Positions 1-63,515 of a stretch of DNA of 64,000 bases are shown one piece after another. The notes under the pieces were generated by a model that did not search any database, was not told the origin of the DNA, and saw only the letters and a list, made by a program, of their open reading frames with translations. Each line of letters begins with the position of its first letter. Position 1 is the first letter of the stretch. The DNA comes from Lepidodermella squamata (lineage: Eukaryota; Animalia; Gastrotricha): positions 248,001-312,000 of the forward strand of contig JBLDXI010000038.1 of NCBI GenBank assembly GCA_047495785.1. The letters are read 5' to 3'. Position numbers and translations under genes: made by a program.

Positions 1-22
1 TCAATTTAAATTTTAAATTTAG

Positions 23-1582
23 CACGTGCTCTATCAACGTCGAATTCGTTAGTATAAATCAAAAGGTAAATCGCTAGAATAACATAAATTTATCCTCGTT
101 TTCCAGTTTCCTTTCGACGTTCAAAACTGCTCGCTACTTTTCTCAAGTTGGACCTATGATGGGACACAGGTGAAAAAAAACGAAAAAATGCAGAACGAGA
201 CTTATGATTTGTTCTTCAAACAGGTTGACATTCAAACTCTCGGAACTACAGGGGACTTGTCGAATTACATGGAGAACACAGAATGGAATTTGATAAATAT
301 GACCCAAGTCAGAGAAATCCGATACTTCAGCTGCTGCCCCAATGATCCGTACCCTTTCGTCACCTATTTCGTGATAATGCATCGACGGCCGTTGTATTAC
401 ATGTACAACTTGTTCATGCCGTGTTTACTGTATGAGATATTTTTTCGCGTCGTGCCTAGCTGACATGATTTTCAGGATTACACTGGTAGCTCTGCTGGGA
501 TTCTTGGTTCCTTCGAATTCAGGCGAAAAAGTTTCAATGGGAATAACAACGCTTTTGTAATTTAAAACAAAACACCATACTGGCTTGCTTTTTCACAATT
601 TGTGTCTTTCAGGTCAATGACCGTGTTTTTGATGGTTCGAGCGTTAAAGTGGTACTTTATTCCCTTGATTAGCTGTATTTATTCCACAAAGGTTGTAGCC
701 GAAAGTATGCCACCGACAAAGAACCACGTTCCGCTACTTGGTAACGTTTTCGAATGAAATTCCTCATTCGGCCACGCATTATCCATGGTTTGCCTTGACA
801 TAGGACTCTATTTCGGTTTCAATATTTTGGTGGTCATGTGCACCACCGCTCTAACAGTGTTGACCCTGAATATTCACCATCACGGACAACGAGGAATACG
901 GTAACGCGGAACTTACTCGTAGTTCAATCCATTTCCCTACTATTTTCATGCCCCTAGAATGCCCACGTTTCTACGATTCATTGTACTGTCTATTCTGTCA
1001 AAACTGGTATTCTACTCTGTGCATCTGCCAGATGGGAAATTGCTTGTGGAGAACGCGGTAATTTGCACACGAATTTGTTCCTGCAGATTGTTCAGATATA
1101 AAATTACATTTTCAGGACAAATCTGTGCCGATTATTTATAAATTGCTATGCAAAGCAACGCCTTCGTCCACTTCGGATCCTTCTGAATCGAATGGTAGCG
1201 ACTCTGCTGCAGAGCAGGATAATACAAACCAAGGCCGCGCCTTACTAAATGATGAAATAGCACAAAAAGTATCAGCTGCTGATTGCTTGCCGGATGGAAG
1301 CAGAGATGCGTTGAACATGTTGCTCATCCGAAACGTCAAACAATTAGTCGAAAGTAATAAGCAACTGAATAGTGACAAAATAACTCGTAAGGCAATCGAG
1401 GCCGAGTGGGAACAGGTTATAAAAAAGCCTTGTGGAAAATTGTATATATTATATTTCTTTTCATTCAGGCGGCCGCAATCATTGATCGGCTGATACTAAC
1501 TGTTTTCTTGGCTATTACGATTGGTGTTTCTGTTTCTATGAGCTTGTTTGATCCCAGCCTCGTTGATTCGTCACACCCATGA
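23..1582 (+). CDS. Nicotinic acetylcholine receptor alpha subunit, 5'-partial. Exons approx. 23-47, 107-169, 224-429, 476-556, 613-634, 692-740, 804-900, 958-1057, 1116-1415, 1469-1582
   Basis: The spliced product has the Cys-loop (TCSINVEF|FPFDVQNC), WTYDG, loop C vicinal cysteines (YFSCCPNDPYP), TM1-TM2 with GEKVSMGITTLLSMTVFLM, and TM4 (IIDRLILTVFL). All introns are GT-AG. Confidence 0.95.
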
Positions 1583-2101
1583 GGACTGAGACCGCATCAA
1601 TGATAGTGCATCCTCAAAGAATTAGCGATGAGTGACAAAACACAACCTTGCATTCAAATAATCGTTTTATTTACTTCAATTTCGCTTCAACTGTTGCTCA
1701 TGAATAAATCATTCAGCTAAGAATTTAAAATAAATATTTGTTAACTTCACTGATTTCACATTCTAAGGATTGCTGAATCTCGCCTCGGCATGGGTATCGT
1801 AATTAGTCAAGGTCTCGATCAGCCATCGGTTAGCTCGGCTTTCTCAGAATAGTTTTGCTCGTTAATTTTGGTAACCAGCGGAATGAATGAATGAACCCAT
1901 AAGCCATACAAGGCGCTTGTCATTGTAATCGGCGTATGGAGCGACGTTAGGCTGTTGAGGTTTCCAGGCATATCTTCCTGGTTGCAATTCAAGCATTCGA
2001 AACAAGCTTCCATGGTACAAAGCAGTTGCCCGTGTATCGATGTTATACTTACCTGTTCCACCTGAAGAAAACTGATGAGAAGAGCAAAAGAAACATTGAT
2101 T

Positions 2102-2158
2102 TTGGCTAGTCTGACGTATTAAAACGTTTCGTCTCGGCCAAGAGACTCCTCAGAGACC
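2102..2158 (-). ncRNA. Type I hammerhead ribozyme with GUC cleavage site between 2113 and 2112
   Basis: The minus strand reads GGUCU CUGAGGA GUCUC-UUGGCC-GAGAC GAA ACGU-UUUAAU-ACGU C AGACU A GCCAA. The core is intact, stems I/II/III pair, and loop II UUGGC is complementary to the 3' GCCAA. Confidence 0.9.
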
Positions 2159-2391
2159 TTTAAACTCGATAATAAATTATATCTAGGTATTAGATAAATT
2201 ATCGGTCAAGTTTGTTGTCTTCAATCAACGCGATTATTTTTGTTGAAGATTATGAGATGTAAAAATGGATGGATGGATTTGAAGCCCAGTCACCAATTAT
2301 GGCGGTATTCATGGGCTGAGGGTTGAGATGATAGAGCAGCCCGATCATCACAGGTGATGGTTTTCACGGGTGCAGTCGATATATAAGAGAA

Positions 2392-3397
2392 TTATATATG
2401 AGTAAAAAAATAACTTCGTAGAAAAATAAAAGTATAATGTATGTAAGGTTCTAATTCGATCCATTGGTCCAATTGCTCCTTGACAAACTCAACAAGATAG
2501 GCGGCTTGACGAGTGGCTTTGGAGGATCCGAGTTTGCGCGCGAAGCTGCGAGTGTCGTTCCAGGCCTTGGTGCCACGGTGGAAAAATGTGCACTGACCAG
2601 TGGTGTTGGTACGTTCAACTGGCAAACGGCAAGAGTCATTGGAGCGTGTCTTAGTGCAGTTGCCGGCTTCCTTTGAGAAGGCTTCAATTAGCAAGTCGGG
2701 CGCTTCGCCGTGCGGGATCTGCCACATAAGCTTTATGACGTGAACATTTCTTCGTCCATGGAGCGAAAGCCATTGTAGGTCCCAGAGTACTGGTTCAACG
2801 GGGAATTGATAAGGCTTCAGCAGTAGGGCCCGGATTCCAGCACGCTGAGCTTTGTCAAGCATGTCAAGGGCGGTTTTAGAGCCGGCGCCTAGTATCCAAC
2901 ATGAGAGTCGATCAGGCTTTTGAAAATCGCTTTTCTACCAGCGAGCGGAACGCCGTTTTGTCCGACAAGGCGAAGGGGGTAGGCACCGCTGCGGCATTTG
3001 TTGAAGATTTTCTCAGCGTGTAGCTCAAGTTTTACCCGATGTCTATTTCCATCCCAAGCAAGGTGATCGATGACTGAGGCTGAACCTTGATTCTGTTAAC
3101 ATTAACATTAACATCGCTGAGGTCCCAATCGATCGGATTAAGTTTTGGGGCAAGAAACATTATTTGAGTTTTTGATTCATCTAGTTTCAGGCTGTTTGAC
3201 CGCAGCCAGGACGCGATGTTGATCAGTTGATGCTCGAGTTTCCCTTGGGCCTGAGCCAAAGATTCGCCAGTGGCGTATTGCGTTGCGTCATCGGCATAAA
3301 GGTAGATGCCGCAGTCGGGGTCGGTGATGACATTTGGCAGCTCATTCACATAGATAGTGAACAGCATCGGGCCAAGGACGCTGCTTTGCGGCACCAC
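2392..3397 (-). mobile_element. 5'-truncated, frameshifted non-LTR retrotransposon (CR1/L2-like) RT remnant
   Basis: VPQSSVLGPMLFTIYVNEL and LYADD RT motifs (3032-3397); the thumb/C-terminal part continues in another frame (2392-2862). Confidence 0.9.
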
Positions 3398-4189
3398 ATA
3401 ATTAATAGGTAAAAAGGGTGAGATGGTATTGCCCAGCGCGCTAATGAATTAGCTGATAAAAGCCTTCCTTCGTGTGACTTTCAATATAGAGGAGGGCGAG
3501 AAGGGTCAAACAGCAGACGGACGACTTCGTCAGTCAAGAATGTATCAAGCCTTCAGGTCTGATGAAACCTCCATTCCAACCGCGAAATTCAAATGTTAAT
3601 GAAGATATTCTACTTTCTATTTGCCGATCAACGACAGAACTGGGCAGAAATGATAGGTATATATAAGAGAAGCTGATCTCAGTACTTAAATAACAAACTA
3701 ACTGACTAGCTAACGTAAAAACCTCATCCTGGTGAATGAATCGAAGTAAAAACGCAGCTTACTCTAATCGCCAACTTCTTCTGACAGCGAACTACTGCTG
3801 CGCGTTCAAGACGAGTCAAAATATGAGAAAAAGCCACGGCAAAAAGTAATTATTTAAGTGCCGGAAAATCAAGTGGACAGTTTATTTTTCATGTTCGTTG
3901 TCAAAATTTATATATTTTAATTGTTTCAATTAAGTAAGGGCAAATGAAAATCGCGAGGTGCAAAATCCTTTTAGCTGCTGATCGCGATCAAGCCGCTCGT
4001 GATGGCTCCTTTTTAGGATCTGCCTGTTCCTCATCGACTTTTAATAGTATTTATTCAAAGTTTGTGTATGGTTTAACTAATACTAATGCCGTACAATATT
4101 TTCACCTTTACAGCTATCCTATTTTCTATGACTGATTAGATTTTTTCTCAAATGTAACGCCGTATTTTGTTATTAGTTTTTGTTTATGA

Positions 4190-7100
4190 ATGAGTAAGAA
4201 AGGAGGAAGAATTGTCAAGGCGCCGAGTGAACTTGTCGCTCTAGGTTAGTATCAATACTTTTTCGATTTGAAATTGGTGAAATGACAGCTTTCAGGATCC
4301 GCTCCTGTCACATCCACTTTCAAGAGAGAATCGGCTCCTCCTACTGCCTCAGGTTCTGTCAGACCTTTGGCCCCTCCTGAAAAAAGAGCCAAGTTACAAC
4401 CGGTTGTACCTGTCAAACCTAATGTAGCAAAGAAATCAGCGGATCTGCCTAAAAAAGACGCTTCTATATCAGAGCCGCCTCCACCTGCTGCTTCATTTGA
4501 TGTCGAACAATTTTACGCTTTGGTTTCTGGAAATGTTATTCCATCTGCCCAATGCGACTTGATGCTAAAGCGGTGCGCTATTTATATAGCCAACAATGTA
4601 GCTAAGCTTGACAATCAATTTATCATGTCCCTTTTTCATCTGGTGAATGAACGTCCGGAGTTGTTCAGAACGAGCATGACCCTAACTGCCTTTTCAGCAC
4701 TGCTCCACTCGAAGCCATATTCTTCTCAGGAGCGCAAAACGGTTATGCTGCCGCCTGTGATTGCTGCCAATGTTCTTTTCCTGGCCTATCGCCATGAGTC
4801 ATGCTGGCCATCTGAATTTATTGCTTTCTTCATTGAAGATGCTCTTGGTGAGCGAATTTGGGTCGAAAGACCTGAGTGTTCGCTATTTGTGTATCATTTG
4901 GTGAAAGCATTTTCAACTCGCTTGCCACCTCATTTGGAAGAATCCATCAGAGGATCAGTCATGAAAAAAGGTGAGAAGCGGTATTTTCCCATGTCAAAAA
5001 GTTTTAATGTTTGTTGGGTCAAATTATAGGCTTCAAAACGATCAACGATACCGTAATTGCCTTTCAGCGATGCCTAGCGGCCATCAACACGAATCTTTCT
5101 AATATTCCGGATCAATCATCGAAATTCAGTGCTGACTGGGATTCTGTCGCTGGTTTGGTCAGCGAGTATGTTCGTGAATTCATCTCTAGGAAGCAAACAG
5201 GCGAGGTTCAACTTCAGAATCTTCTGAAAGTCATGCTCCTTACATGTTGCTTTGCCGAAATAAGGTGAATGATTATTTACTTTTTATTTGTTATCTAATA
5301 TCTAACTTATGTCTTAATCAGAAAAATAGCTTCTGAGAAGCTAGAGTTTTGGCTTCAAAATCAGAAAATAGTCAAACTCGCTCAAGATCTCTTAATGACT
5401 GTTTGCATGAATTCTTCTGGTGATACATCGATGGAAACTGATTCTGTAAACGCTATTATTAAAGTAAGAACAACTTGTGTTTTAATTATTTTTTTACGTC
5501 GACTTTTTCAGCTAAAATATGCTTCTAAGCAAAAGCATCTGTCTTCTCATTTTCTATCTTGTATTCGGCAACTTTTATCGTCGAACCCACCGCTTGCGCG
5601 TAAGCTGATCGTGCAACACGTAGCTGGTGCCGAGTTGGTGCCACCAACATCTGGTCCTCGTCCCATCGCCAATGTTTCGCTACTGGATGCCGCGTTTTCC
5701 GTCGATGGTGGTTGGGCAACAAACCACATACTTGCTGATTATTTTGGAGAAATTATTTTTACCGCGAAAGAAGATCCTCTGAAAGGCCTAAGAACTGCTT
5801 TGCGCGACATTGTAACTGGCGTCAAGAGTCCGCAATTGAGCCTCAAAGTATTCGTTGATGTATTGCTCAAACTGACTGACAAAACTGGCAGTGACAAAGC
5901 TCTTCGCGATCGAGTTATCGTCAGTGTTGCCGATATCGTCTGCCTTTGTCAGCAACTTCTAGTCACCGAATTGATAGTCAATGCGTTTGAAAGCTTCAAA
6001 ATGTCCGACCCGAATTCGTTCGGATCGCCCCTGCCAGCTGCTGTGTTGGAGACAACTTCCCAAACTGAAACGATGCTTCGAAAATTTCAAGAGCAAGTCG
6101 CATCGATTCAGTTATCAGCTGCGAAATGGTGGCTTGGTTTGAAGCCGGGCGGAGAAGCTTTGGGAACTGGCTTGAAAACATTACTGATTATGGATAATCC
6201 GATGACCTATGTACAGCGTGACAATTTTCCGGCTGAGCCTGAACGGTCGCAAATTTTCCGAATCCTCACTCAATACATTCCATCGTCTGAAAGCATGTTT
6301 CAAATGATCATTCAGTCTCCTTATGCAAGTGAGCAGCACTTCTACGCGTACCAGCTCATGGAAATCTTGTGTGGCTTGTTGGCGCGAAATGCAACTTTGG
6401 CTCGAAGATCGCTCCCAACCATTATTCCGTTCAAAAACTCCGATTTGATCAACATTTTGCTCAACCATTCAAGGTATAACGTCGATAAATCCTACGGCGA
6501 ATATCACGATTTGGCTGTCACTTCGTTGTACTGGAAAGCCTGGTTGGTTGTTCTTCTGTCGGTTGCTGTCAACCCATCTGGTCTCGGTGCGATTTTCTGG
6601 CGTAATTATCCGACGCTGCGCTACTTGATGGAAATGTGCATGACCGGCTGTTACGAATTTCCTTCTGTTGCCGTCGCTTCTCAAGCACAGGATTTGGCTG
6701 AAGAAAAACGAATTGCAGAAGAAGAGCACGCCGCTATTTCGATGCTAAGCCAGAAGTTGAACGCTTCACTCGGTAATCAAGTAATGTATTTTGACCCGAC
6801 CGGGCCTGCTCGTCGACCGCCAGAAGCATTTTTTGGTGAATTGTCGCGGCTGAATGACTTGATTGGCATTGGTGCCATGCTCTGCAAATCACGCGATCCC
6901 GATTTCCTTCAAGCCCTAACCACACAGTCTCAAACTGCTGGACGACCAATGCCCTGGTTGAGGAATCTTATCCTGAATGCCGATGACGCGCTATTCGTTC
7001 TTCCCGTCCATTGCGTTTGCCAATTCGTCCTCGATGTCGAGCAAATGCCTGATGAAGCGAAATCGCCGCAAGAGGCTGAAAAATGCTCGAAAATCTACGA

Positions 7101-10100
7101 GCAAATGACTGGTCTGGTTGCGTTGGCGACACCAGGAAAGCTGAAAGAATTCCAACTCGCTGGTCAAATAGTCGTAAATTTTGTCACGAGGCTGTCTTCT
7201 CCTTCTGCGAATCAACGTACAGCTGCCCGGCGCTGTCTCTCGAAAATCTGTTCGCTTACCGATGGCGACGGCAGCCAGTTTCAACTTGAAGCATTGTCAA
7301 GTCTACCGGTGTATTCGGCGAACGAAGGCGCCATTCTGAAATCTCTCCACGAGGCGTTAAATGTCGTGTTGGACTTGCAAGCTGCGATGAATTACTTGCA
7401 ATTCATTTTATCGAAGAACTTGGCAGCTCTACCGGTCGAATTGCGGGAACCACTGGTTGTCGACGTTTGCCGGTTTATTGTCGAGCGAAGAACTTTGTCG
7501 ATCGAAGGCCCGAAATCAATTCTCCCTGCTGCCCCGAATTCCGCCTCATGGACTGCAGCTCAAGCTGAACTACATCAGCAATTGATGGCTTTGCTTTCTG
7601 AATATTTTTCGATGACAATATCTGACCCGAAAATGCAAACTAGCCTAGAGTTCGTTGATCCAGCTCGGCACGTAAAAGTTGTTTTCAAGGTGGAAGGTGG
7701 CCATTCCCGCGTTTTCCATATCGCGGTGGTCGAAGCTGCTGTTCTAATGGTTGCTCTCAAGTCGACAGATTCAGATTCTCAAACTAGGTAAAATTAAGAT
7801 GAAACGGCCTATTTGTTTTATTAATAATGGGTTTCCCACCAGCTTGGTTCGTATGTGGTTCAGTTCAGACCCCGAAGTGCGGCCCAAGTTTTTCCATGTC
7901 ATCGATCCAGAGCAAATGCTATCTCGTGGGAATCCGTTCAAACAAGATTGGCTCCGACAAATTCTGCTCAATTCAGCCCAGCCGCTTTTGATCGACACGG
8001 CGCTGTCATACTGCTCGACTATCGATTTGTTAAATTTGGCTCGATCATTCGGCATTGAGCCAGCTGTTACCGGGCGATTTCTCGACGAACTGGACAATCA
8101 ATTCTTGCGCAGCCCAACAATGGCTAACGAGTTGATGCCGACTGGGAATTTAGATGATGCTCGATTCATGTTAAGATGCGTTCAGGTATAACAGAAATAC
8201 CCCTAGACTTACGCATTTTTAACGTTTTGTGCAATTTCAGGTCTATCAAAAGCGCTTTCTCGCTTCGCTGCCCACGCCACCTACAGCGATGCCGGGTCAA
8301 AAATTTGTCGATTGCGTAAATCAAATTTTGAGTGTGAAGCAGCAGCAGCAACAACAGCGGAAACAAAGCGTGATAAGTCGAAGTGCCCCTCAATCTCCCG
8401 GCGGTCCGGCTTCGCCATCTTCAGCCCCTGCGTCACCGATGGACATGAATGCTGGTGAAATTCCATCAACTATCGACGACGCACCTGCTTCGCCAACGTT
8501 CGGCGATGTAATTGTAGCGAAGAAGTCAGCTCTTGACTGCGATTCTTTCTTCAGCTTGCCTTCTATGTTCCGGACAATAACAACGTTGAGCCAAGACAAG
8601 AACTGCAATACAGCGAAAATCCTCAGCTCGATCGAGGACCAATTGTCTCAAGACCTGGTTTCAGTCCGAGAATTTGCGATGAGTTCACCTGGTATTTGCT
8701 CTATGCTTCTCGGCGCCCTATCGAAGTCAAAATCTACCGATTTGCAGCGCTTGATCGAAACTTGTAAACGTCTGTACGTTGAAGCCGGTAGTGATTGGCG
8801 AGAAATTATTCGGTCAAACTCGATTCTGAAACGTGAAATGGCAGAGTTTCTGAAGAAAGAAGACGAAATCGCGGTCGCTGATAAACCTGCTGTGGATGAC
8901 GAAGAAATCGCCAGCATTTCTAGCCCGGTTGAAGCTGGTGGAAATCTGCGACTTCTCGTTCCAGACGAAATAGAGTTCAGCGACGAAACTCAAATCAGTC
9001 GATTCATTTTCCTCAACGGCCAATGGACATTGGGCGAAGGTCTTCGGCTGTGTTCTATCCTTCTCGAACGGCGTGATGCTCACACAGTTTGGAAGGTTGT
9101 TTCCATCCTCCTCAATACATCGAAAGACGACCTGCCAAAAGACTGTAGTTTGATTTTCGGTTTCATCCACGCGGCCTTCGAACGCCCAATCACGTTTTTG
9201 GGTCGCGAAGTTGTCGCGGCAAAAGACAGCGATCTGACCTTGACTGTTCTACCTGAGCTAACCGATCAAGAAATTCGAAATCTACTCGAAATTATCGATC
9301 GGTCATACGTCAATAATTCGGATAGCGTTGTCGAATTATTGAATATTCTAGTGACGAAGTTCGCGTCTCGAGTTGATATTTTCGTCGATTGGGTCGCGAC
9401 AAAGCTGGCTGATGAAGAAGGCGCGCTGATTACCTCGAGAATGGAGCTGACCATGAAGTTATACGCTCGGGTTCCTGGTCTGCTGACTAAACTACTCGAG
9501 AAACCTCGCCTAAGAACTGCGACAAGTATGCAACGACTCGACGCTCTCGCAGATTCGACTGTGCAAACGTTGCTCCTAGCGATCGGAAGCAACGATATGA
9601 AGCGCGGCTGGACTGAACGAGTTCGAGAAGCCACCTCAATGTGCCGTCGACTCGCAATTCTACACCCTGGTTTGATTTTGAACAATCTAGATCTCCTCGC
9701 CACGCTGATGCAAGGTCGAAATACTGCTGTCTCATTTCCCCAATTTCGCAGCTTGAATCACATGAATATCCTCGGCAATTTGCTAAGTGTCCTTCTTTTG
9801 CTTCAACCGAGCATTTTCGCGAATCGCCATTCAGAAGCGTTGAAACTAATCATCGATTCTTGCGTCGAGATATTTCAGCTCTACATCAGCGAGACAGACT
9901 CGATGCGGCAGTTGATATCAAAATTCGCGAAACTAATCGTAGGTATGATCAATACGAATCTTCCTATGGCCGTCAAGTTGCTTAAAACGCATCACCAATT
10001 GCTGCATCGTTTGAGGCAGCTGCTCCGAAGCGACGTGCCCGAGCTCGAAACGGCTGATTCCATCCTCGATTCTGTGGTCCACGCACCGGCGAAAAGCACC

Positions 10101-15005: not shown

Positions 15006-17098
15006 TCGAAAATCTTGTGCTCAAAAAGTCCTATTATAATACATTCTCATTTTCATGGCGCCAAAATGCACCTCTGTTTTCTGTTGTGTGTAAATTATTT
15101 TTTACCTTCGAGCAACAAATTCGATTTGGACGTAATCTCTTGCATTCTAATTTATTTGACCTTCGAGGTTCAGTGATCATCCTTACTTGCATCAACCGTC
15201 GAATCGAAATGGAATGAATAAACACTAAAATTGTTGAAATAAAACAAATCAAGGGAAGGCCGTGATGACTGATAAAATGTGCCCGGTCCTGATGTCGATT
15301 ATAAAAACCTGAACATGAAACATGGGTAACAATGTCAATCTCTGTTGATAATAGCAAGATTTAAAATGGAGTTGTTCTGGACCCTTTCTAGCTCTTTTCC
15401 CACAAAACAATGTCGTAAACCCCTCATCTTTTGCCTTCTACCGAGAATGGCAGGCCGCACGAGTCATTTTGGCATGCATCCATTTGACTTCATCTCATAT
15501 GATTTTAGGGAAACATGGGCATGGAAGCCTGCCCTGAAAATTGCCAATTTGTCATATGCTTTTCCTGTACTGACTTTTAAAATAATAAGCAATAGATATT
15601 ATATTTCGTTTCGCCCCAACCCACGACGGTGGTTCTACTACAGCGAACGTCTGCTAGACATTCGTGTTGATTGTTGCTGACAAACTCGTGCTGCCCCCTT
15701 GCGGGGCGGACTGCATCCTCGCATCTCCGTCTCTACAGGTCCCGGTTCAGGGAGTGCGCCTGGCGTCCATCCGCAGTACGTGCTTGGTACGTGTCCTAAC
15801 CATCGCAGTCGACCAGGTGATACACCTTATAGCATTGGTGCGATATTCATATTTTCTTATACTTTCAACCTCAGTGTTGTTTCAGCCGTCTAGTTTGGTA
15901 CTGTCGGGTTCAGCGTGAAATTCTGCGTATTCTCACCTAACATGAAACCCCAATATACACTCTGCCGTTTGTTGTATATATTTTTTGAGTATGGGAAATG
16001 TTGAAAATTTGTGTGTATAAATTCAAGATTATCTTCATAAATTGACGTGGAACAATATTTTAGACTACAGGAGCTATAAAAAATAATAGCTTGGGCGCGC
16101 GCCACCGAGAAATATTTAAGGCGGCTCTGCCATCATAATATCATCAACTGCAAGAGCCGCCCATCGTTGAGCTTCATGTAGGCGATAAACTGGGGCTGGT
16201 GGTGCAGGCGAGCAAACGCCTCGCGGTAACGGTGCTGAACTGATAGGACTTCCACGTAGCGCAGGTAACATGAGACTTATTGTAGACATCATAGCGTATG
16301 AGACATCACGCCGCAGCGCGAAACTTAGCATCAGCCACCCGCAACCCGATTGCCAAGTGCCTGTTCGAACAGCCGCTCCCTTCTTGAAGGAAAGCACGGA
16401 AAGAAAGGAAAGAAGGAAACAGCTATTTTCTTGAGCTTTTGTCGGCGCTTGAGCTTTTACTCGAAGGTTCATATCGATCAAGTCGTCTCTCGTTGCCACG
16501 GAAAAATTGTTTTTTTCTCCGGAGTGCCCTACACGCCCCTGTTCTTTCTCGCCGTTATAGTTGTACCTTACGCTCTCTGTACTGCAGAATGACTGCCTTC
16601 GGGCGATCTTCCGCCGCGACGATCGCATTAGTCTTTCCGACCTGGAAAACCGCTGGCATGTTCTAGGTGGGGCGGCCTTCTTTGCGCAGTGCGGCGCTGT
16701 GCTGCAAATGCTGCTCAGTTCGTACTGCCTGTGGGCGATGACCTCAAGAGCGTCCGCCTGTCGCCTCAGGTCCCACCCTATTCACCCTTCGTACTGCTGA
16801 ATTGCTTGCTTCCTCTTGGTCCTTTTCCGACCTTTCCCGGTTAGCCCTCCTTCACTTTCTCTCCTTCTTTGCGTCTCTCACTTCCTCTGTCTCTTTGCCT
16901 CGGGTCGCGGGTCGCAACTAACTGGCAGATCTTTAGCTGGTCAAGCGGCACCACCACGTCATGGTTCCAGTGCATGCTTCCATATACCTTATCATACGCT
17001 ACTTATTCCTACCTTCCTTGCTATATATAAATTATATACTACCCTCTCTTCCAATGCCTCTCTCTCCTCTACTCACCCATCGGTTTTTTTTTATTTAG

Positions 17099-17462
17099 GC
17101 GGCCGCAATTATTGATCAGCAGATAGTAACTGTTTTCTTGGCTATTCCGATGGCGTTCCTGCTTATGACCTGTTTGATCGTAGCCTCTTTGATTCATCAC
17201 ATCCATTATACGCCGTTAGGACTTAGACCGATTGCGACAGCTCCTTTGCATCCTCAGAGAATTCATAGCGGTAGGTGTCAAAACACAACCTTACCTTCTG
17301 ATTACGGTTTCTTTGATTTCTTTATCCCTGTTGCTTCAAGAATAAATCAATCAACTTAGTGAATGCATCGCTAATAAGCACTTTAAATGTAGGCAAGTAA
17401 GAAATATAGAAATAATGTATATCCACTTCTTTTTCCTTTCTAAGGATTGCTGAATCTCGCCT
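17099..17462 (+). pseudogene. Diverged duplicate of the nAChR last exon and 3' UTR (source 1469-1785)
   Basis: It starts ag|GCGGCCGCAATTATTGATC versus ag|GCGGCCGCAATCATTGATC in the source. Both copies end in CTAAGGATTGCTGAATCTCGCCT, and small deletions shift the frame. Confidence 0.9.
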
Positions 17463-17577
17463 TTAGGTAGCCGAAGTCAGAAAATTCCTATGCTGAAATT
17501 ATCATATTTATTGCTTAACTAAAATGGCTTTCTGGTGTGTAACTGTAAATAAGCTTAAACACCGACATCGCTGACAT

Positions 17578-17751
17578 CGCGGGGTGGGCGACAGAACGAC
17601 CTGACCACTAAAATAGCGCTAAAACTATTTTTTGCATCTCCGCCAAGTCAGTCGCGTGCCGGAAAAATCGAATGCCAGTTTTTTCTATGCATCTAAATCA
17701 TTACGCCACTTGTTTCTATTTTAGTCAGGTCGTATTGTCGCCCACCCCGCG
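17578..17751. mobile_element. MITE of 174 bp with ~36-39 bp imperfect TIRs and a 4-bp TSD (ACAT)
   Basis: CGCGGGGTGGGCGACA..ACGACCTGAC..CTAAAATAG is mirrored by CTATTTTAGTCAGGTCGT..TGTCGCCCACCCCGCG; ACAT lies at 17574-77 and 17752-55. Confidence 0.85.
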
Positions 17752-18056
17752 ACATGAAAGCGCTGACATGTGTTATGGCTGTGTGAGTTCTTCGCCGACA
17801 GCATAACAGACTACCCTTTTAGCTTTAGAGAAGCTACGAAATGAATGCTACGAGGGCTAGCAGACGGTTATTCTTCGCATTTTGGTTAAGCCGATTTGGC
17901 TCATTCCTTCCAACTTCAATCCACAAGTTTCACGCCTCCGCAGACATTGCCAGGCGTCGAGCGTTACAGGAAAAGTTCAACAATAACATGCGGCAATTTT
18001 TAAGAGTATCAGCAATTAAATTGTCTTACGCGCACTTGCTTCGCAGTGCGACGTAA

Positions 18057-20760
18057 TGGGCAGGTCCCAATTTTTCTCAATCCTGGAATCTGGGATCCTG
18101 AACTGGCTATCATTTGAACCTATGATTTAGTCCGAACTAGCCCAAGCTGCCTTCAAAATCATTAAACGGGTACGTCTTGATGTTTTCTGGGCAATTTCGT
18201 CGAAGGCTTTGGGAATGCTTTATTGATAGGATATTGACGTTTAAGCGCAAAGCGCAAAGCGCAAAACATCTACAGAACTTCAAAAAGGACAGGATATGGC
18301 TAAATCTGGCCTCATTTCGCAAGTACTTGGTTAGACGCGGATACCTAAGTGTTTTATCTTGGAGATGCATTGGAGCAGTTCACACGATCCCTTTCGCTCG
18401 CATGTGTTTCCTTATACAATTAACACCTACTATTCTTATAAATACTGTGTTCCAACATGTCGATGTCCAACATTTGTTCCAACATGCCAATAAGGATCGA
18501 CATTTCGCTCTACAACATTCCAATTCTTCCGTAATCTTCTGTAGCGGAGATCATGATTGCGAATTAAATTCCTGTTCACTCAATGTCACGATCGTAGGCA
18601 GGGAAGAAATACGCTGAATGGCAGCGTGTCTTTTTCTAAAATTTAACAATGAATAGACAAACCAGGAAGAAGCCGCCTTAAAAATGTCATGTGGAGTTCA
18701 AATGGCGTATGACTTACATTTTTTAGAGTTGCTGAGTTTTTGAGAAGCTCAAGCGAATTTCAAGCAATCTGTTACTGCTCAGAATTCACCTTCAATTTTC
18801 TTCGGGAATTCTCAACAGGACTGAGGATTTATAGCGGAAACGATTTAACTTCAAGTTCCTCAATCTGCTGAGTGCTGCTGAATAGGTATAAGGTATTAAT
18901 CAATGCTCATATAACGCGTAGATTCAGGACTCTTTGTAATATTTTTTATACTTGCAAATTCGTGCCAAACGGGTTTGTATGAAGCATTGAAATCTGTTGA
19001 TGCTTCTTCTTAAACAAGGAATAGCTAAATACGAACGCGGTTAACAAGAACAAGCTTCCCTTGTAACTGTTTGCTCAACGAAGCACATTTTTCGCAAGTC
19101 AATACTGGAGAGAGAAATTTTGTTAGGCACGGAATTCCCATAATTTGCAGCTATGGATTTTGGCGTTAATCTATGGTCATGTCGACTCGGCTTTGCCTCA
19201 ATCCGATGTCATCCTCTAAGATGATTTTTTCGTAAAATCTTGATCATCTCTTTTGATACGAAAATGGAGGATATAGGTAAAAGATGAAAATGATAATACG
19301 ATAAATTGCTAAAAAGACTAGCGACGATACTGCTACGTGGAGATGGAAGAAATAGCGACGAATAAATGGTTGATCATGGATCACGGAGATGCAATAGGCC
19401 AGTTCACATGTGTTTCCTAAACTTGAATAATTACAATTACTCTCAAAAACCAACGTTCCAAAATTCTGATCTAGGTATTTTCTGCTGACTAACATTCAAA
19501 TTTCCATTTAATCAAAGGCATAGCAGCTGACACATCTTTCTAAAACGAGGAGTCAGACTTCTGGCTGCGGAATAATTCTTGTTCACCCAATGTTCAAATC
19601 ATCGGCAGCGACGAAAAAAACTAAGCGACAGCTTATCTATCTAAAATTTAACGATGATTCGATAATCCGGGAAGAGTCAGCCTTGAAAATGATATGTCGA
19701 CTTCGAATTGCGTATGATAATTTTCAACACGAAACATGAAAACCTATACAGATTGATATTAAAACCGTTTTTTGTTCAACGGCACACATCTTTCGCAACA
19801 AAAATAATAACGATCACCGAAATGACCGTTTATTCAGAATTCTAAATATAAGGAACCCTCTATTCAATTGAGGATTCATCTTTTATTTAAGGTCTCTATT
19901 ATTTTCCGTTCGTCATAAAAAAACACGAGCATTAGCTCCATTTTTATCCATCTCGACCCACGTTGATTTACGCCCTTCGAAATTTCCGACCCACTCTTCC
20001 TCCACATTTTAAGTTTAGGTGTTAAAGCAGGACAAATATGGTTTAGGCGATCGCAGGCGCACGCGCTTTCTAGTGAAGCTAATAGTTTTGACTTTCCTCA
20101 GTAAATTGCATCTTCCCGTTATTACTTAATTCCCTTAATTCTGTAAGTCTATGGTCATCTCGACTCGGCTGTGACAAGGGTACCACACTGCTTACGCAAT
20201 CGGATGGAACTATCAAGCCATCTATCCCTCACACTCTCATTTGCTACACGATCACCATTATTGCTGCGTTCGCTATAATGGTCTGTTAATTACCGCGTAA
20301 GTGCGCGCGCAACACTAATAAGACCGATATTTTGACGCACTTCCGAAATTAGGCAGATATTTGTACGCGGTGGGTGTGACCCGTAAAGCAAAATAGTATC
20401 TACTGATTAATGCAGCTGCTCATTACCGGAACACGAAATTCCGATAATAACTTTATACATGACATTCCTGAATCATCAACTGAATTCTGACAAATTTTGA
20501 CGCTTACATTCGACAGGTTGGTTTTTGCGCGCGAATGGGAAACCACGCTTAATCATGGCGACGAAACATAAATTTAAATTATTTGAATGTGAAGGCCATT
20601 GCAAAAAAATTTAATTTTTCTTAATCTGACTGTAAAAATATTTATTTCAAAAGGATAGTAAAAATAATACTGACTTGCCGCGGGCGCCACAGACAAACAG
20701 AGAAAAACGGGAAGGGGGTCTGCCGACTAACAGCAGTCCCGGTAACCCGGGACCTGCCCA
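18057..20760. mobile_element. Non-autonomous PIF/Harbinger-like DNA transposon, 2.7 kb
   Basis: Perfect 12-bp TIR TGGGCAGGTCCC (18057-68) / GGGACCTGCCCA (20749-60) with TAA directly outside both ends; no intact transposase ORF. Confidence 0.75.
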
Positions 20761-39623: not shown

Positions 39624-40929
39624 TATTAAACATCAATTCGTAACATAAGCTAGGATCAAAATTAATTAAAATTATATCAATGAGTCAGTGAAGTTGAGTG
39701 GAAATAACAAATCGAAGATACTCCACGGCTTTTATAAAACTAAACAGACGTAGAAGTGCTGAAATGTATGTGGTATGTATGTGCTTATTGCTTATATGCA
39801 CGTTGGATTCGCTTCGTTGGAAACCTGAGCCTGTGAGAACTAGAGCCTCGTCAGTCTCAGGTCTCAGCGTCCGTTTTCAAAATTCACAGCATGAACTTAC
39901 CCCTAAAGGATAAAGGATGCGACCAGACAACAAAAATTCATGAGAGTAGCATGCATAACTTGGAACAAAATCACACTGCGAGGACTTTTTAATGATTCTT
40001 AGCCTAGCGAATGCAAGTTGATGGCAATGCAGTTCGCAAAACAGCTGAGTTACTAAACACTAAACACCAGAGACAAGAGATCGACCAGTTTTTACCAAAC
40101 TAGTGAAGAGACTTTTCATAAACTGACAAGAGTTGGGGCTAAAATACCACGGTATACACTTAAGTTTGACTGGAGTGATATGATCTCACTGATGAAGTAT
40201 GATGAAATCTTGAGATCTTAAATCTTAACGGTTTAGAAATGAGACTAACTGCTCCGATCAATTGGGGAAAGGAGATGCAACAGGTCTCCAACGAAGTTAT
40301 AAATTCAGGATCGCAATTGAGGAAATTTACCAACCTCCATGTTGAAGACTGATAGGCTATTAGCCACTAGCCACAAGCCCCAACAGTTTACTGCTTCTCA
40401 ACAATCCGGCAACCGCTCGGACCAAAACCAGAGACCTGAATCATCATCAGTGGCCGCGAAGACCCACTGTTTATAAGTCAAGGTCGCTGAGAATACATGC
40501 GGCAATATTTAACCGTTGAAATTACAACAGACTATTTTATATGATATTGGCGTTTCTTTTCGTCAATTCCCGCCAATTATTTAGAATGACTTGAAATTAA
40601 AATTGAAAACCACAAACTTCAAAAAAACCTTGCTCATTTCGAACGTACGAACTTCGAATGTTGGTGCGGAACGAACCGGTCGAAGAGAAAAGTTTACTCT
40701 TCGCTAAAAACTCTCGTGTCACGAGTCCATAGAATTTAGTGAGACCTAATTTATCACGGCTTTTATGGTCTTAAAATTGTGAACTTCAATACCTCAGATA
40801 GAGCCAACTTTCACCTTGTACTGTGAATGTCCGATTCATATAATTCCATCACTGAGCCAACTGCTATCCTATTCATTCTAGGCCATGAGTATAAGGCAAT
40901 AAAGCTGCACAATAATCTCTAATACCAAA

Positions 40930-63240: not shown

Positions 63241-63257
63241 TTCAAGCCGGAAATTTC

Positions 63258-63405
63258 TCTAATTTAACAGACTTGTCCTTAATCAACTTAGCTAGCTTCT
63301 TCTCATTTTCAAGGGGTTCATCATTATGTTAATCTCTGGATTTAACCGCTTGGAAAATGAGAAGAAGCTAGCTCAGTTGATTAAGGACAAGTCTGATAAA
63401 TTAGA
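63258..63405. repeat. Long inverted repeat with ~60-bp arms and a ~25-nt spacer
   Basis: CAGACTTGTCCTTAATCAACTTAGCTAGCTTCTTCTCATTTTC pairs with GAAAATGAGAAGAAGCTAGCTCAGTTGATTAAGGACAAGTCTG with 1 mismatch. Confidence 0.95.
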
Positions 63406-63515
63406 AAAATAGCCACTCTTAATTGTCTTGATACCGAGTTGTGCTGAATCGTGATGATGACTTCATGTTGTGTGCTTTTCATTTTGACACTAAATGTTTT
63501 ATCTTTTGTTGTTTA

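Follow-up and report, generated by a model that had tools for sequence, protein, structure and literature searches.

A type I hammerhead ribozyme with a predicted pseudoknot in the gastrotrich Lepidodermella squamata, probably a solo remnant of a Penelope-type element

We describe a genuine hammerhead ribozyme motif on the minus strand of positions 2102–2158 in a genomic stretch of the gastrotrich Lepidodermella squamata, and propose that the locus is a solo, 5'-truncated remnant of a Penelope-type pLTR, a reading to which we assign a probability of about 0.68. The stretch analysed, called the window below, comprises 64,000 nucleotides (contig JBLDXI010000038.1 of assembly GCA_047495785.1, positions 248,001 to 312,000), and all coordinates refer to it. 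The nucleotides of the consensus core (C3UGANGA9, G12AAA and U16.1-H17) are all present, and the three helices are arranged as type I requires, with helix I open-ended and helices II and III closed. The parts of the ribozyme are as follows.

2102–2158, minus strand: whole type I hammerhead together with its pseudoknot tail, identified by descriptor and covariance model
2158–2154 and 2112–2108, minus strand: stem I, GGUCU/AGACU, 5 bp, terminal pair G-U
2147–2153, minus strand: catalytic core CUGAGGA
2146–2142 and 2135–2131, minus strand: stem II, GUCUC/GAGAC, 5 bp, G10.1-C11.1
2141–2136, minus strand: loop II, UUGGCC
2130–2128, minus strand: GAA
2127–2124 and 2117–2114, minus strand: stem III, ACGU/ACGU, 4 bp
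2123–2118, minus strand: loop III, UUUAAU, 6 nt
2113, minus strand: C17 of the GUC site, on whose 3' side, at the 2113/2112 junction, cleavage is predicted
2107, minus strand: single A between stem I and the tail
2102–2106, minus strand: 3' tail GCCAA, predicted pseudoknot partner of UUGGC in loop II

How readily would such a motif arise by chance? When the window was dinucleotide-shuffled 300 times, a type I descriptor with stems of 5/5/4 found 0 sites; relaxing the stems to 4/4/4 gave 0.01 sites per shuffled window. In the window itself, strict and minimal descriptors alike recover one hammerhead only. A covariance model gave the ribozyme 42.3 bits (E 5e-10) and the runner-up in the window 11.7 bits; since the 19 unrelated metagenomic type I hammerheads used for training were fetched with a pattern drawn from the core of this ribozyme, the score leans upward and is supporting rather than independent evidence. 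A second match to the model, at 40182–40252, has an E value of about 1 and neither stem II nor GAAA, and was set aside as chance. Rfam returned no match reaching the gathering score; below threshold, Hammerhead_3 matches in part, with 21.8 bits and E 0.069. The predicted pseudoknot consists of 5 Watson-Crick pairs between loop II and the extension of stem I, where at least 4 are needed for the pseudoknotted class, and a 5-bp complement of loop II within 9 nt occurs in 0.7% of local draws by chance. The initial annotation had thus correctly recognized a complete type I hammerhead on this strand and the complementarity of its loop II to the GCCAA 3' of stem I: every part is in place, and descriptor and covariance model agree. 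Its placement of the ribozyme between the 3' end of a nicotinic acetylcholine receptor (nAChR) gene and a LINE relic holds as well, both neighbours being recognized by domain search.

Predicted folding gives a more varied picture. The folding energy of the ribozyme is no better than that of shuffled sequences (z -0.7 to +0.55). The minimum-energy fold computed by ViennaRNA is a register-shifted misfold, in which CUGA pairs with UCAG and the GCC of the tail pairs upstream, and it lies 2.3 kcal/mol below the active fold; the comparison concerns nested folds only, as the program cannot represent pseudoknots. The pseudoknot helix alone contributes about -5.2 kcal/mol, loop costs not counted. The nested model likewise prefers a misfold in two of four natural metagenomic hammerheads with this register shift. 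The probability of the stem II helix ranges from 0.2 to 0.95 depending on context. About 40% of the hammerheads in one study have a pseudoknot in the stem I–stem II region (Perreault et al. 2011, PMC3088659), and pseudoknots of such a kind were required for fast cleavage at 0.5 mM Mg2+ in the cases tested (PMC3088659). The human C10orf118 ribozyme, whose pseudoknot is also of 5 bp and is required at 0.5 mM Mg2+, is intronic and conserved across mammals (PMC3088659), whereas the ribozyme described here is intergenic and repeated. In one study, 8 of 9 predicted retrozyme constructs (frog) did not cleave (10.64898/2026.07.22.740005).

The surroundings of the ribozyme comprise a palindrome and the two neighbours mentioned above.

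2162–2212, no strand assigned: imperfect AT-rich palindrome, 51 bp, adjoining the 5' side of the ribozyme; a candidate for the fold-back junction of the proposed insertion
2265–3448, minus strand: 5'-truncated CR1/L2-like LINE relic, a neighbour outside the ribozyme element
1–1875, plus strand: 3' part of an nAChR alpha-type gene (Neur_chan_LBD; stop at 1580–1582)

The palindrome stands out by its z score (-3.3, and -4.0 in a tile ranking, where it is number 7 of 1066) and is unremarkable by plain self-alignment score; it may be a chance AT-rich hairpin, as about 1% of tiles score as high. No inverted hammerhead follows on from its right arm. A comparison of 1786–2101 with 2190–2266 gave no direct repeat of at least 7 bp that could represent a target-site duplication (TSD), and positions 1–8000 hold no tandem unit. 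At the locus there is no Penelope RT/EN ORF, second pLTR or tail, and the only nearby RT is of LINE type. This LINE relic retains the C-terminal half of the RT at 3035–3448 (RVT_1, E 2e-13), has undergone at least two frame changes and ends its 3' tail in (CCAT)n near 2265; beyond it lies INTS1 on the plus strand. The receptor gene carries AATAAA at 1703 and 1729, and putative RNA contigs extend to 1875.

Several further features were noted around the locus. A decayed, frameshifted duplicate of the receptor's last exon and 3' UTR occupies 17084–17479 and is about 72% alike to 1454–1785; within it, a 25-bp stretch (17438–17462) is identical to 1761–1785 and may be a conserved 3' UTR element. 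The duplicate was considered as an empty site and rejected, because the homology stops near 1785–1809, about 300 nt before the ribozyme. A second LINE tail at 1860–2010 was discarded, its score being equalled by 65 of 500 shuffles. On the minus strand 3' of the ribozyme there are splice-like signals: a pyrimidine tract-CAG at 2084–2072, another near 2062, a donor reading CAG|GTAAGT near 2053 and, near 1978, one more CAG. Open frames of 95 and 99 aa (1865–2149 and 1822–2118) also lie 3' of the ribozyme; neither has a meaningful Pfam match or an Atlas match, and a 70-aa piece of the former matched only repetitive proteins among 1.8 billion representatives. A resemblance of minus-strand 1865–2074 to a fragment of a P-element-like transposase was likewise dropped, as the search returned only repetitive, unrelated matches.

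The ribozyme clearly belongs to a repeated sequence set with several related copies. We surveyed contigs from a sequencing run that holds 0.99 of the words of the locus, and that may be the source of the assembly, aligning them at a likeness of at least 80%. Summed contig depth, which is not the same as copy number, is about 100 in single-copy stretches, 990 in the ribozyme bin (2070–2176) and 400–1200 in the LINE tail and 3' ORF; in the bins towards the receptor gene (1856–2069) it is 100, with no pile-up of relatives. Three contigs depart from the locus sequence at 2160, and the relatives of the LINE depart at 2265, at the (CCAT)n tail, where they have loose ends; the ribozyme and the LINE are therefore separate repeats. 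Only about 60–90 nt of the ribozyme region are common to the relatives. Four contigs, which account for 612.6 of the 781.6 of depth at 2120, are devoid of four letters there, either 2120–2123 or 2121–2124, as the alignment convention is compatible with both. In the former case helix III of the relatives is the perfect palindrome ACGUAUACGU, in the latter it is ACG-AAUA-CGU, and under both readings the relatives have a 3-bp stem III closed by a tetraloop. The predicted formation of stem III is 0.09 in these short-loop relatives versus 0.75 in the present copy. As most relatives have a loop III shorter by four letters, the 6-nt loop is probably private to this copy, and from the same majority we infer that the longer form is the derived one. 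Loop III tolerates insertions, and so its gain can be neutral. On the plus strand, which is that of the receptor, the four private letters create ATTAAA, a variant of the poly(A) signal, at 2118–2123; an AATAAA is also present at 2171–2176, and the ATTAAA is probably a matter of chance. A family-specific pattern had no match in JGI metagenomes, IMG/VR or GTDB. A general hammerhead pattern retrieved 53 metagenome loci, about 20 of them plausible hammerheads, and BLASTN of these loci against the flanks of the present one revealed no homology.

How could a solitary ribozyme have come to lie between these genes? In the parent element the ribozyme would have resided within the terminal repeat (pLTR), cutting precursor RNA to unit length. 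A strongly 5'-truncated insertion, or later erosion, would have left the ribozyme and a short tail, with the fold-back palindrome marking the 5' junction of the insertion, and 4 nt would later have been gained in loop III of this copy. If the minus strand is transcribed, the RNA would plausibly self-cleave after 2113 in monomeric form, with assistance from the pseudoknot of loop II with the 3' tail. What is known of Penelope-like elements (PLEs) is consistent with this scheme. PLE insertions mostly lack their 5' part and carry a single terminal repeat (10.64898/2026.07.22.740005), a palindromic short helix III is typical of PLE hammerheads, and most motifs are dispersed singles from truncated copies (PMC4209133). 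In rotifer Penelope pLTRs, 5' palindromes are read as self-priming scars, and solo pLTRs devoid of a TSD exist (PMC3846280). Animal retrozymes, too, seem to descend from pLTRs, and solo monomers of them are left behind in intergenic DNA (10.64898/2026.07.22.740005). The present locus resembles the ribozyme end of an element of this sort. For a locus read as a solo remnant, the missing PLE RT ORF is expected. The initial annotation had proposed, as one of two options, a recent member of a retrozyme or Penelope family: membership in a repeated set stands and fits that option, and 'recent' is not supported, there being no TSD, tandem unit or body shared with the relatives. It had also taken the ribozyme to be intact amid decayed mobile DNA. 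This argument is not supported: the LINE inserted separately and may be older or younger, a motif of 57 nt offers mutation little to hit, and loop III of this copy itself departs by 4 nt from that of most relatives.

The locus shares with the PLE pLTR hammerheads (Cervera and de la Pena 2014, PMC4209133) the type I topology, a helix I of 5 bp, G10.1-C11.1, occurrence as dispersed single copies and as families in one genome, and an animal host; its relatives add the short helix III, palindromic in one of the two readings. It differs from them in its helix III, which in this copy is 4 bp long with a 6-nt loop rather than short and palindromic, and further in a predicted 5-bp pseudoknot, a 5-bp helix II devoid of the extra 9/10 nucleotide, and no PLE ORF or second pLTR. 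PLE hammerheads with a small palindromic helix III are thought to act as dimers that process precursor RNA (PMC4209133; PMC6765202). The solo pLTRs of Adineta vaga (Arkhipova et al. 2013, PMC3846280) likewise combine a 5' palindrome with the absence of TSD and ORF, but measure about 200 bp, against the 60–90 bp common to relatives here.

Overlapping with the Penelope-type reading, and set apart from it by the immediate parent, is the idea that the ribozyme represents one monomer from a tandem non-LTR retrozyme family whose other members give rise to circular RNA. A stable helix III and a tertiary contact between helices I and II are typical of type I retrozyme hammerheads rather than of minimal PLE ones (PMC7229834; Li et al. 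2026, 10.64898/2026.07.22.740005), solo monomers are common and also occur between genes (Cervera and de la Pena 2020, PMC7229834; 10.64898/2026.07.22.740005), and a metagenome locus of similar design, L002, is a 284-bp tandem. Retrozymes, however, have tandem units of 150–400 bp, so that 150–400 nt should be common to the relatives, against the roughly 60–90 nt seen, and the window holds a single ribozyme with no tandem around it; its contact is a predicted Watson-Crick pseudoknot instead of the canonical loop 1/loop 2 set of retrozymes. We consider this origin improbable. Another carrier, such as a CACTA/EnSpm transposase intron or some other spliced minus-strand unit, is unlikely too, if less so. 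Here the ribozyme would cut intron RNA about 30–40 nt upstream of the 3' splice site, for which the pyrimidine tract-CAG at minus 2084–2072 and a CAG|GTAAG donor at minus 2055–2048 could be cited; yet the two downstream frames have no recognizable relatives, and the stretch that holds them is single-copy in the reads. If the ribozyme instead belonged to the 3' terminus of the neighbouring LINE, this would fit the strand common to both and the distance of about 105 nt from the LINE tail. Against this, the relatives of the LINE end at the (CCAT)n tail, the link between LINE tail and hammerhead occurs only at this locus among the listed contig pieces and joints, and the reviews consulted describe LINE ribozymes as twister or HDV-like motifs situated 5' in the element (PMC6765202; PMC7761336). 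This is the least credible reading.

Has the host put the ribozyme to use? The initial annotation had raised co-option against antisense transcripts into the receptor gene. In such a scenario the loop III insertion would have rendered a mobile-element hammerhead active as a monomer, which was then retained for severing minus-strand RNA, started in the LINE relic or at a divergent INTS1 promoter, ahead of any overlap with the receptor 3' UTR. The orientation fits, as the ribozyme is antisense to the receptor gene and lies about 230 nt past the last putative RNA contig; the extra letters raise the predicted formation of stem III as given above, and vertebrates have domesticated intronic hammerheads (PMC3088659). 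The domesticated type, known from RECK and C10orf118, is single-copy and conserved between species at the orthologous site, however, and this ribozyme has related copies elsewhere in the reads. In the presumed RNA run, whose nature is a guess and whose contigs carry neither strand nor transcript ends, low-depth contigs cover the last exons and 3' UTR of the receptor to 1875 and the relatives of the LINE tail; depth in the ribozyme bin is 1.8, which speaks neither for a minus-strand transcript nor for silence. Moreover, the duplicate of the receptor 3' end has no hammerhead, and the change in loop III can be neutral. Co-option therefore has little probability in our estimation, and its most specific form, a hammerhead that the host keeps as a one-way cutter, monomeric by virtue of four letters in loop III, to shield the 3' end of the nicotinic receptor gene from antisense RNA, has less still. 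At this site the ribozyme is most likely a passenger.

What does the Penelope-type remnant add? Type I hammerheads with a pseudoknot are already known, as are solo PLE hammerheads in dispersed positions, and a literature search gave no ribozyme report for Gastrotricha; the locus contributes a hammerhead family from this phylum, and its significance is modest. The family is the more interesting object, the single locus being probably a passenger. Its members seem to combine a short helix III of PLE-like form with Watson-Crick pairing in a pseudoknot. Reviews, in contrast, portray metazoan PLE hammerheads as minimal and devoid of tertiary contacts (PMC7761336), a comparison outside which the Terminon and PLE-dimer literature lies. 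This copy and its shorter-loop relatives constitute a natural pair for the effect of loop III length on dimer versus monomer cleavage.

Some minor observations concern the metagenome loci and the rest of the window. L002 and L044 resemble the present ribozyme in design, with a 5-bp stem I, AG and the palindromic ACGUUAACGU helix III. In L002 (1–534) a retrozyme-like 284-bp tandem unit is present in 1.9 copies, each with a type I hammerhead and palindromic helix III; L044 has a single type I hammerhead at 123–179, closely similar to L002 in stems I and III and the tail, upstream of a minus-strand RING/IBR-like cysteine-rich ORF. Type I hammerheads with a long helix III followed by A-rich tails were found in L006, L008, L012, L014, L018, L023, L024, L033, L038, L041 and L052; in L014 and L018 a small ORF follows immediately, and the L018 locus has a phage-like appearance. 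In the window, 63253–63410 is a MITE-like palindrome of 158 bp (85% identity), 17577–17752 contains MITE-like inverted repeats of 40 bp (87%) around about 100 bp, and a dispersed direct repeat of about 145 bp (74% identity) is found at 18567–18712 and 19574–19717.
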